Shown here: positions 39,022 to 41,969 of the stretch, piece by piece | How the letters are laid out: each line of letters starts with the position of its first letter | Numbering within the stretch: position 1 is the stretch's first letter | Assembly: GCF_964188315.1 (NCBI RefSeq) | Contig: NC_135670.1 | Span: forward strand, 27,280,001 to 27,344,000 | DNA length: 64,000 nt | DNA from: Podarcis muralis | Taxonomy: Eukaryota | Direction: 5' to 3' | Translations under genes and position numbers: made by a program | Notes under the pieces: generated by a model | Database searches by the model: none | The model's input: the letters and a program-made list of their open reading frames with translations, nothing else | What the model was told of the DNA's origin: nothing

Positions 39022-41969
39022 AGTGTGCTTGGAACCTCCTTTTGAAACGGATGTTCTTGGAAGGGGGAGGTCCAGCTCAGGAGCTGCTGGTTGAGGAGAG
39101 GTGCCAGCCAGGTGAGGCAACAAGTGTGTCAGTGCAGCCAAGATCTGCCCACATGCCACCTTCAGCCAGCAGCCATATTCATGCCCCCCAAACATGGGTT
39201 TTGCAAGTGTGGTGTCAATCCATCCTTGCATGTTTGCCTGAAACAGTTCAGGGCCAGGATTGACGACACAGAGCAGGCATTGTCCTGTGACAATCATTTC
39301 TTCTATCGCTGCTTCTAAGGTTAAAATAACAAGCAGTCCTCTTTTGAAAAACTTGCCAGCATTGTTCATCGGCCCTGTATTTACAATACTCCCAAGCCTG
39401 CCTTGCAACCACCTTGACACACATTCATTGGTTTGGCCCATTTCCTGATGGCCCTGAACAGTCTGATGACAGCCACTGTGCTATTTTGTCACACTTGGGA
39501 CAGGCCATGAGCCTGGGGGACTCTTTGTGGGAGAGCCAGAACAGGCAGGAGAAGCAACAGCTCCCTCCACAACACTTCCTGGAGCAAAGCAGCTTTGAAT
39601 TTGACTCATCAGGTGTTGAAGGAAGCCCTGGATAGCAGCCATCTTCTCAATGTGACCACCTGTACAAATCAACTGCCCAAGAACTCCTCTGGAAACCTGT
39701 TCCGGGGAGAAGTTTCAACCTGAGCCAGAACCTAGCAGGCAAACATGTTCACACACAGCAGGAACAAACAAACGCCATATTCCAGAAGCGAAAATAACGA
39801 AGGGGGAGGCGAGAATACTTAGGGCGGCCACCCGATCTGTCAGCTGGTGGTAAATACCTCCTGCTGGCTCACAAACATCTTTTGAAAGAGGCTGCAAGAA
39901 CTTGAAGGCCCCCAGCGAAGCCACTTCTGAACGGGGCACTGAGCCCAGGTTCAAGTTTGGCCTTCCGACCATTGGACCCACAGAACTGGGGGCATCTCCA
40001 TGCAAACAGTGGGGAGTCCCAGAACCAGAATTGTGTGGGTTGGGTGAACTCCCAGGCTCTTGCTGCTTCCAACCCTATGAACCACGCCAACCTGGGCAGC
40101 TGGCCTGTGGACTACCCTGATTTTTCTGTATTATACAAAAGCATCACCCAGCCTCTCAGCTCTTACCTGACGGCGTGGCTCCCTCTGGGTTGCTTGCGCC
40201 CTGCACTTTCGTCCCCAGGATGGAATCTGGCAGGAGAGACGCAAAAGCATCAGCTATGGGAGGAGAGCAGAAAGGCAGGCATCCATCTCAGATGGGAGAA
40301 CTGCCCTCTTGCCCAGTCAAAGACCCACCTCCCCAAGCTCAGGCAGTTTCAGGGTTTCTCGTCATGTCAAAGCAGAGAGCCACCTGCAATATTCAGCTGG
40401 CCGTGATAACTCCCAGATCACAACAGCAGCTGCTGAAATCATAGCTGTCAAGCGTCCCTTATTTGGTGGGACACTCCCTTATTCCAGCACCATGCCCCGC
40501 TGCTGTCCCTTATTGATGATGTCTCTTAAATAAGCTACTGAAGGTAATGGGGCCCTTTCTATGTCCAGCTTGCTTTGTCAACAACAAATTGTTGCTTTTT
40601 TGTGTGTTGAATATATGCTATATGGTAATTTATGGACCTAATAGGTATCTAAAGCCATTTGCACGCAACAAAATATGTATTTTATAAAAGTAATTGTTGA
40701 TCCCTTATTTTGGCTGCTGATCCCTTATTTTCAAGGCTGCTGGTCCCTTATTTTCAAATCTGTAAGTTGACAGCTATGGCTGAAATGGACCAGGATTCCA
40801 CAGAGCCCACCAGACAAGCCCAGTCCCAATAATGGAGAAGCGGGTAAAGGGAGAGACTTGCCCCCCACACCAAGTTCCTTACACCAGAGGGGGCTGTCCC
40901 AGCAGGACCAACCCCTACCAAGTGATCCTTCTAACCAGGCCCATTGCACAGAGGAGGGTTGAGGCCAACTTCCGGGCAAGTCCCCCAGAGTTATTTTTTC
41001 CTGGGAAAATTAATCCCAGATTGTTACAACTCTTCTTCCTCCTAGTCTCAGAGTCACTAACATATGTCAGAACTTGGCACATGAACATTTGGAGGAGAAA
41101 GAGGCAATGCTTTTTTTTAAAAAAAAATTATTTGTTTTTTTAGATTAAAGTTTTACAATCACATATCCAACATAAAAACAGGATTCCAAAGAATCTCCAG
41201 GAATTCTCCCTCCTCCCCTTTGTGGGTCCTATTATTAGTCATTTCCTCCTGCATCTTTTACAGTAATCCAAATCTTTTACATCTCCATTATGTCCAAAAT
41301 TCACCATTAAACTACAAGTGTTATTCCAACCCTACTAACGATTTTAGCTGTTTACAATGGTTTTTTTTAAAGGTATATTATAAAGTTTCCCCATTCCTTA
41401 TTACAATTTTGGTCTTCCTGATTTCCGATTCTTCCGGTCATTTTTGCCATTTCGGCATAATCCATCAAACTTAATCGGCCATTCGTCTCTGGTAGGGACT
41501 TTATCATCTTTCCATTCGCTGAGTCTAAAGCATGGTGAGAAAGAGGGAATTCTTGCCATGCTTTAAACTCAGTGAATGTCTCCTGCTAGGGAGAAGGGGT
41601 GGGTGGGAAGAGGTACATTTAAAACCAGGTCTTTTGAAAGCAGGCAGTGAAATGAGGAAGAAGCCCACCTTTGGAGCCCCCTGAACATTGTGGTTTCTCC
41701 AAGTCATTAAGAGACAGGGGTCTTCCCTCTCCCCCACGCAACATCTCTGCACTTTCTCTTTCTTCGGGAGATAAATTGACCCACCCTGACCTCAGCGCCC
41801 CCACCCCTCCTTCACCGCCAGCACAGAGGAGCCGGAAGGCAGGTGCGTTTAGCTCACCTTTGAACAGCTCCACAGCTCTGAATTCAAAGGGGATGTTGTT
41901 CTTCTTGGCAAAGAGGTAGACGGCTCGGCAGGGCTGGGAGAGGAGGTCTAGGTACAGCTCCAGCACCAT
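32792..41969 (-). CDS. GSTT1: Glutathione S-transferase theta, copy B, 257 aa, six exons; probable orthologue of chicken theta CL1/GSTT1
   Basis: Exons 41858-41969 (112), 40167-40226 (60), 37219-37291 (73), 35828-35978 (151), 34499-34675 (177), 32792-32992 (201); 774 nt in frame. Peptides WHQANIRANAPK, VLIPLFTGQPLPPEKLQEVMEGL and IQIDPRLKEQL closely match chicken GSTT1 as recalled. The symbol is tentative because theta paralogue naming differs between species. Confidence 0.9.
33135..33488 (-). mobile_element. Sauria SINE, second subfamily
   Basis: 16-bp TSD ttgcagaagg(t/c)catag. Confidence 0.9.
33507..33869. mobile_element. Fold-back element: 89-bp inverted arms, TG..CA termini, catag on both flanks
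   Basis: Arms 33507-33595 and 33781-33869 differ by 3 transitions; 185-bp spacer; TATAAAA at the right arm/spacer junction on the minus strand. Confidence 0.8.
33870..34259 (+). mobile_element. Probable 3' part of an LTR
   Basis: Purine-rich, AATAAA at 34173-34178, ends TGACA; abuts the fold-back element. No TSD found. Confidence 0.4.
34930..35600 (+). mobile_element. L1/Tx1-clade LINE ORF2 3' fragment
   Basis: YLKMIHRWCLTP..KCKEVEGTFFHMRWTCKKVKELWEMIYNEL, the CCHC zinc-knuckle region; frameshifted. Confidence 0.75.
36405..37170 (+). mobile_element. L1/Tx1-clade LINE 3' fragment (hosts a PLE terminus)
   Basis: MIYNELEKMLKITFTKKTPEAFLLG..., homologous to 34930-35600. Confidence 0.75.
36817..36966. 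mobile_element. Second, older Penelope-like terminus with short inverted arm
   Basis: aaaaattccttccagtagcacc..ccaactaag inverted against cttagttgg..ggaattttt; same gactatggcagaccaacacggctacc end; only the half hammerhead gcacacgaaagctcatac remains. Confidence 0.7.
37528..37850 (-). mobile_element. Solo LTR, about 323 bp, sense to GSTT copy B
   Basis: Minus strand reads (C/T)GTTATGTACTGAG..., repeated CCAAT/ATTGG units, TATATAAA (37615-37622), AATAAA (37565-37570), ...TTTCA. Flanks cagat and cagaa resemble a 5-bp TSD with one mismatch. Confidence 0.7.
38575..39019 (+). mobile_element. L2 3' fragment with (TAT)n tail
   Basis: Near-identical to 28898-29496. Confidence 0.85.
40167..40226 (-). 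CDS. Extra 60-nt phase 1-1 exon of GSTT copy B (DSILGTKVQGASNPEGATPS)
   Basis: Acceptor ttttgcgtctctcctgccag, donor CAG/gtaaga, open in the required frame. Resembles the chicken GSTT1 insert DSVLGKKPAAASGAE (recalled). Confidence 0.85.
40440..40778. mobile_element. hAT-type MITE
   Basis: TIR catagctgtcaa / ttgacagctatg; perfect 8-bp TSD gctgaaat. Confidence 0.88.
41115..41525 (-). mobile_element. L1/Tx1-clade LINE 3' fragment
   Basis: Reverse-complement similarity to the 36405 fragment (WMDYAEMAKMTGRIR); boundaries approximate. Confidence 0.55.

Follow-up and report, generated by a model that had tools for sequence, protein, structure and literature searches.

The human theta-class glutathione S-transferases (GSTs), GSTT1 and GSTT2, are encoded by five exons, among them, in GSTT1, exons of 151 and 177 nucleotides (nt). 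The proteins are 240–244 amino acids (aa) long, and helix alpha2 follows directly after the boundary between exons 1 and 2. In GSTs, a Glu-Ser pair is the usual binder of the gamma-glutamyl group of glutathione, and identity above 40% is the usual criterion for membership of a class. A chick liver GST, CL1 (Swiss-Prot GSTT1_CHICK), was reportedly cloned and described in Biochem J in 1995, and this form of the protein is said to have been known since the 1990s. Here we consider a gene from the lizard Podarcis muralis, found in a 64-kilobase stretch of DNA—the ‘window’, to whose positions all coordinates refer. A six-frame scan of the window finds three theta-GST genes in tandem, all on the minus strand. 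The middle copy carries an additional exon, of 60 nt, between its exon 1 (41969–41858) and the equivalent of canonical exon 2 (37291–37219). Very probably, in our judgment, this is the constitutive second coding exon of the P. muralis orthologue of chicken-type GSTT1, a gene of six exons for a protein of 257 aa, and what it encodes is an ancient sauropsid insert.

Read on the minus strand, positions 40226–40167 form an open stretch of phase 1-1, bounded by AG at the acceptor and GT at the donor. A pyrimidine-rich tract ending in AG (ttttgcgtctctcctgccag) precedes the exon, which starts ATTCC and ends CCGTCAG before the donor gtaaga; its translation is D-SILGTKVQGASNPEGATPS-G, the codon for the last G being split. 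Exon 1 ends ...VELFK plus one base (G) at 41858, followed by the donor gtgagc, and the exon after the insert begins at 37291 behind ttttag, its translation starting (G)PLPKATAVKKVP. The coding sequence of the whole gene amounts to 112+60+73+151+177+198 nt, or 771 nt, which is 257 codons. The phase being 1-1, the frame would survive loss of the 60-nt exon, with a predicted product of 237 codons, the figure that the original prediction, made from the sequence, had arrived at.

RNA data over positions 37000–42200 bear out the exon and both of its splice sites. We used two raw runs from P. muralis (X23 and X24), in which junctions were listed from three reads upward, and two sets of contigs, one from P. 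muralis (X1) and one from another species (X9). The junction with exon 1 (40226>41858), which also supports the exon 1 donor, is crossed by 139 reads in X23 and 58 in X24, and the junction with the following exon (37290>40166) by 122 and 52. Both are GT..AG on the minus strand, both are present in the X1 and X9 contigs, and the counts are far beyond chance. The junction that would skip the exon (41858>37291) falls below the three-read threshold in X23 and in X24 and is absent from the X1 and X9 contigs; skipping, therefore, lies below about 2% in X23 and about 5% in X24. Length-scaled depth in X23 tells the same story, at ~163 for the 60-nt exon and ~176 and ~214 for the exons that flank it. 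First mates lie on the plus strand, which is what a stranded library should give for a gene on the minus strand, and the loose ends of reads at 37219 match the opening bases of the 151-nt exon, so that the donor at 37219 is established too. In the sampled runs, then, the 60-nt exon is spliced into essentially every transcript, and is constitutive there.

The original prediction called this exon hidden, which it is not. The translations of all six exons are exact, contiguous matches in the RefSeq protein XP_028566411.2 (P0206; glutathione S-transferase theta-1-like, P. muralis, 257 aa), as an exon-by-exon substring comparison shows. They begin at residues 1, 39, 59, 83, 133 and 192, the gaps being three split codons only, and between protein and window gene there is no difference. 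The 60-nt exon corresponds to residues 38–57, of which the whole codons, 39–57, were matched exactly. The closest hit, Eremias argus (P0137), has a 257-aa model likewise, and its 90% cluster holds 257-aa RefSeq proteins of P. muralis, P. raffonei/lilfordi, Zootoca vivipara and Lacerta agilis; no skipped RefSeq isoform of P. muralis is found among the members of that cluster. The exon is thus already known, from the current RefSeq model and from dozens of annotated orthologues, and is not new in kind. A different public model for the same gene, UniProt A0A670JRP2 (P0144; P. muralis, Ensembl-type, 250 aa), lacks it. This one reads through the exon 1 donor into the intron (41858–41800) as …ELFKGELNAPAFRLLCAGGEGG, identical to the translation of the window intron, the read-through segment also being given as GELNAPAFRLLCAGGEGG, and rejoins inside exon 2 (37291–37275). 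The RNA junctions contradict it, and we take A0A670JRP2 to be a mis-annotation. What the present analysis adds is a flag on this wrong public model, read evidence for constitutive inclusion and the pattern of alpha2 erosion after the gain of the exon, described below. In the literature on chicken or reptile GSTT1 we found no paper that discusses the insert, the CL1 paper being outside our reach.

Relatives were collected by way of the last exon. A search of a representative protein library with its 66-aa translation led to bird GSTT1, whose C-termini are 73–77% identical to it, and a word search started from one of these bird sequences then yielded 885 relatives. Among the library matches, bird GSTT1 reads ...HVELFK DSVLGKKPAAGSGAEQPRA GPSNSEGAGKVSLLKKVP... 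and a chimeric model from another reptile (P0001) reads ...ALFK DSILGSKVPGSSDAEGGSAQP GPPQDKLTLSKKVP.... From an alignment of N-terminal parts we tabulated the insert in 27 orthologues: 16 squamates (lacertids, an amphisbaenian, a cordylid, snakes, geckos, a teiid, agamids, iguanians and a skink among them), 4 turtles, 1 crocodile and 6 birds. Every one of them carries it, after ...[EV]LFK and with the start pattern DS[IV]LGxK. D is found in 24 of the 27 and S in 26, while I or V, then L, then G, occur in all; position 7 is K or R in 25. The rest of the insert is rich in Gly, Ser, Pro and Ala and varies in sequence and length among species. Shared as it is by squamates, turtles, crocodile and birds, the exon is at least as old as the last ancestor common to lepidosaurs and archelosaurs, which upholds the earlier assignment of the exon to a sauropsid theta-GST lineage. 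Homology to the bird insert, which had been proposed by comparison with the chicken protein, is upheld too: quail (Coturnix, P0138) reads ELFK-DSVLGKKPAAASGAERPRT, in agreement with what the original prediction gave for chicken.

Closer comparison brings out how the lineages differ. Bird GSTT1, at 261 aa (P0088, Corvus; P0090, Myiozetetes; P0138, Coturnix), has the insert in the same position as the lizard, with the same start, composition and C-terminal tail, at ~73–75% overall identity. In birds, however, the insert has 19 residues, and the next exon is of canonical length (GPSNSEGAGKVSLLKKVP) with a drifted alpha2, whereas in the lizard the insert has 20 residues and the next exon is five codons shorter. 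The bird insert is probably a separate exon as well: two mispredicted models, P0006 and P0008, join at GPSNS.., and the 261-aa and 242-aa forms differ by 19 residues. Turtle GSTT1, also 261 aa (P0114, Trachemys; P0110, Caretta; P0112, Chelydra), agrees with the lizard in the position and start of the insert (DSILGRKMPGGNNPGHS..) but, unlike the lizard, keeps canonical alpha2 (GQQYREEFGKVNIL). The human enzymes have no insert. The paralogues on either side in the window are of the canonical type, as human GSTT1 and GSTT2 are. Both have a canonical exon 2, and neither yields a counterpart of the 60-nt exon by tblastn or by a scan for the motif DS[IV]LG, although the lower copy has a 133-nt N run in its intron 1; that the exon is confined to the middle copy had been noted before, and agrees with what we find.

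Three models seen in the course of these comparisons deserve mention in their own right. The chimeric P0001 (327 aa) is a gene prediction assembled from parts of three neighbouring theta-GST genes. It shows both that the tandem of three genes is a shared arrangement and that gene callers readily merge its members in error. In Athene noctua, theta-1-like isoform X2 (P0154, 262 aa) is a paralogue of the canonical GQHRTEEFRKVN type with a 20-residue insert, ASVIGKTSAIVSGLARQPGT, in the same place; the start SV[IL]GK is common to this insert and that of GSTT1, and a related exon may be present in the neighbouring bird paralogue. In the skink Tiliqua scincoides, isoform X3 (P0143, 243 aa) has no insert and reads ELFK-GEGEADAFRVATAVKKVP. 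Its canonical length and a DAF motif resembling alpha2 are a hint that skinks may possess a second form of exon 2 that codes for alpha2; alpha2-like sequence of this type is absent from the window upstream of 37291.

What stands behind the insert varies from group to group, and it is here that the history of the exon can be read. Turtles have the canonical alpha2 sequence; the crocodile and the birds have sequence of canonical length that has drifted, to AQSQSAESGKLNIL and GPSNSEGAGKVSLL, respectively; and squamates are two to five residues shorter, P. muralis reading GPLPKATAV in an exon of 73 nt rather than ~88 nt. The five missing codons are at the 5′ end, where alpha2 is normally encoded, and tblastn aligns the exon with exon 2 of the paralogues only from KATAV onward. 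Because turtles keep alpha2 behind the insert, the exon was an addition in front of alpha2, and alpha2 eroded later, furthest in squamates. The Glu-Ser position varies as well. Turtles and crocodile have Glu-Ser (LAES/LSES), birds have Glu-Cys and squamates mostly Glu-Gly; the window protein, with VLSEG, goes with most of its squamate orthologues. Some canonical theta paralogues have Glu-Cys at this position too.

For structure we turned to AlphaFold2 models of two orthologues, that of Eremias argus, 96% identical, and that of Trachemys (P0114). The Eremias model, from an alignment of 61 sequences, is a confident theta-GST fold, with a mean predicted local distance difference test (pLDDT) score of 84.7 and a predicted template-modelling (pTM) score of 0.83, but residues 41–66 have pLDDT <50, and no helix is predicted between beta2 (28–32) and beta3 (71–74). 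In the turtle model confidence is equally low over residues 39–70 and the insert is again disordered, but a helix is placed at 58–70, the position of alpha2. The insert of the lizard protein is thus predicted to be a disordered loop, and the flexible, Gly/Ser/Pro-rich loop of the original prediction finds its counterpart in the model. The further idea that the insert replaces alpha2 fits squamates, in which five codons have been lost and no helix is predicted, but not turtles, in which the alpha2 sequence and a predicted helix follow the insert.

The gene itself is a theta-class GST by fold, by sequence, by the context of its catalytic serine and by its exon structure, and glutathione-conjugating activity is predicted for it. 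The Eremias model combines a thioredoxin-like N-domain with a helical C-domain and a theta-type C-terminal helix. Foldseek returns for it human GSTT1 (2c3n, 2c3q) and GSTT2 (1ljr, 4mpg) as top matches, with template-modelling (TM) scores of 0.83–0.90; 2c3n comes first (TM 0.83/0.89, 50% identity over the model), and across human GSTT1-1 (2c3n, 2c3q) and GSTT2-2 (1ljr) identity is 46–50%. Exon 1 aligns with residues 1–37 of human GSTT1 (E 1.5e-14), and its MVLELYLDLLSQPCRAVY matches the human protein residue for residue around Ser11. The 151- and 177-nt exons have the sizes of those in the human gene. Membership of the sauropsid six-exon type is seen in the insert after ...ELFK, in its DS[IV]LGxK start and phase 1-1 exon, and in a C-terminal tail of the type ILNIKxLSxIQIDPxLKExLxPxLxKxLK. 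Searches with single exons gave matches to human GSTT1 and GSTT2; Pfam recognized GST_C in exon 4 only, exons 1, 2, 3 and 5 being too short to score, and a PDB search with the 23 aa of exon 2 gave no match.

Put together, these observations suggest the following course of events. An exon coding for 20 residues in the present lizard was gained at the old boundary of exons 1 and 2, in front of alpha2, before squamates, turtles, crocodilians and birds parted; it adds to the thioredoxin-like, glutathione-binding domain between beta2 and the position of alpha2. Squamates later lost five codons from the beginning of the next exon, the part that codes for alpha2. The lizard enzyme is consequently predicted to have a single flexible loop of ~26–29 residues in place of the alpha2 ‘lid’ over the glutathione site (G-site) of other theta GSTs. 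Such a loop, at the mouth of the site, might alter dynamics, access or affinity for glutathione, and its conserved first residues, DS[IV]LGxK, are likely to pack against the domain or to form part of the site. Gain of an ancient exon and lineage-specific erosion of the adjacent alpha2, in a well-known detoxification enzyme, make this a tidy and apparently unstudied case.

We considered two other accounts of the exon. The original prediction proposed a splice switch, in which a 257-aa loop form and a 237-aa skipped form, differing in access to the G-site, would be made according to tissue or condition. The symmetric phase of the exon allows for this, and public annotation includes insert-free proteins of 242 aa in birds (P0101, ‘isoform 2’; P0102, ‘isoform X3’), turtles (P0129, P0130, P0142) and tuatara (P0123). 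A cassette exon reveals itself, though, by inclusion and skipping together, and the X23, X24, X1 and X9 data hold inclusion junctions only: fewer than three skipping reads stand against 139 and 58 for inclusion, exon depth equals that of its neighbours, and the RefSeq cluster offers no skipped form of P. muralis. The squamate skipped product would, moreover, be five alpha2 residues short, and hence a non-canonical enzyme, and many of the 242-aa models may stem from homology-based annotation that drops exons not found in mammals. A regulated switch in the lizard strikes us, on balance, as improbable. For birds and turtles the matter is different, in that skipping there restores a protein of canonical length and the exon might still be used as a cassette; regulated skipping may occur in birds, turtles and tuatara, if the 242-aa models there rest on RNA and not on homology. 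The other account is that the exon is a recent, lacertid-specific exonisation of intronic or repeat sequence, free of functional constraint. Most of the insert is indeed of low complexity, its sequence and length differ from one species to another, and neither paralogue in the window has anything similar. But the position and the DS[IV]LGxK start are the same in squamates, turtles, crocodile and birds, and the read depth is that of an exon, unlike that of the repeat-like, high-copy intronic stretches nearby. Together, the cross-sauropsid alignment and the exon-like depth rule out recent origin from a repeat, and we give the idea next to no credence.

A constitutive exon of ancient sauropsid origin remains our preferred account, and several points weigh against parts of it. 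The tissues of the RNA runs are unspecified, and skipping may take place in some tissue or condition. The predicted disorder comes from a model of the 96%-identical Eremias protein instead of the exact window protein, and its low pLDDT can reflect a thin alignment signal in a variable region. The conserved DS[IV]LGxK start, furthermore, suggests a structured or binding role for which the model does not account. A bolder scenario can be sketched, possible to our minds but rather doubtful. The gain of the exon in the sauropsid stem would have relaxed selection on the alpha2 lid. Birds, crocodilians and squamates would each have let its sequence decay on their own—squamates losing five codons—while turtles kept it; DS[IV]LGxK would have taken over part of the role of lid or G-site; and, with the change of Ser to Gly or Cys in the Glu-Ser pair, the glutathione site of sauropsid GSTT1 would have been rebuilt, its affinity altered or its function partly new, with cassette use in birds and turtles as a possible extra.

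Features of the three-gene array, and other elements mentioned in the text, are collected in Table 1.

Table 1. Positions of theta-GST genes, exons and other features in the window
Feature	Position	Strand	Remarks
Upper theta-GST copy	~53212-45993	-	Six-frame scan
Exon 2 of upper copy	51725-51636	-	Canonical; GQNRTKEFGKVNLLGKVP
N run in upper copy	48831-49055		Second N run; intron 4
Middle copy, exon 1, coding part	41858..41969	-	ATG 41969-41967; 37 codons + 1 base; beta1-alpha1-beta2 with catalytic Ser11 (LLSQPCR)
Open reading frame in intron 1	41744-41670	-	Resembles N-terminus of P0210
High-depth intronic stretch	40480-40827		Reads and contigs on both strands
Middle copy, 60-nt exon, second coding exon of six	40167..40226	-	Phase 1-1; sequence, both RNA junctions, RefSeq match, sauropsid conservation
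High-depth intronic stretch	38566-39087		Reads and contigs on both strands
High-depth intronic stretch	37522-37869		Reads and contigs on both strands
Middle copy, equivalent of canonical exon 2	37219..37291	-	73 nt vs ~88 nt; (G)PLPKATAVKKVPVLRDEAFVLSE(G); KVP cis-Pro motif
Middle copy, canonical exon 3	35828..35978	-	151 nt; human GSTT1 match, E 1.3e-15
Middle copy, canonical exon 4	34499..34675	-	177 nt; GST_C PF00043, 26.9 bits vs cut-off 20.7
Middle copy, last coding exon (canonical exon 5)	32792..32992	-	66 codons (32992-32795, 198 nt) + TGA stop 32794-32792
Lower theta-GST copy	~29868-25272	-	Six-frame scan
N run in lower copy	29497-29629		133 nt; intron 1
Exon 2 of lower copy	27640-27551	-	Canonical; GQQFSEDFNKVNILRKVP

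The last coding exon of the middle copy encodes the chicken-type tail ...ILNIKQLSTIQIDPRLKEQLGPVLLKILK and is followed directly by AATAAA. In intron 1 of the same gene there is an open reading frame (Table 1) whose translation shares 92% identity with the N-terminal end of P0210 (245 aa), an isoform X2 from older RefSeq annotation. It would be an alternative first exon, joined to the 60-nt exon in a protein without catalytic Ser11; none of the junctions listed in the RNA reads starts from it, and we rejected it as a candidate.

The three high-depth stretches of Table 1 have very high read and contig depth on both strands, with many mismatches and loose ends. By appearance they are dispersed repeats (transposable elements) that are transcribed elsewhere in the genome and do not belong to the GST transcript. 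Finally, the RNA differs from the assembly at two positions. Every X23 and X24 read has T for C at 37269, which leaves the Ala encoded there in exon 2 unchanged, and at 41972, which is –3 from the ATG on the minus strand, all four runs have T for C; both differences are probably polymorphisms relative to the assembly.

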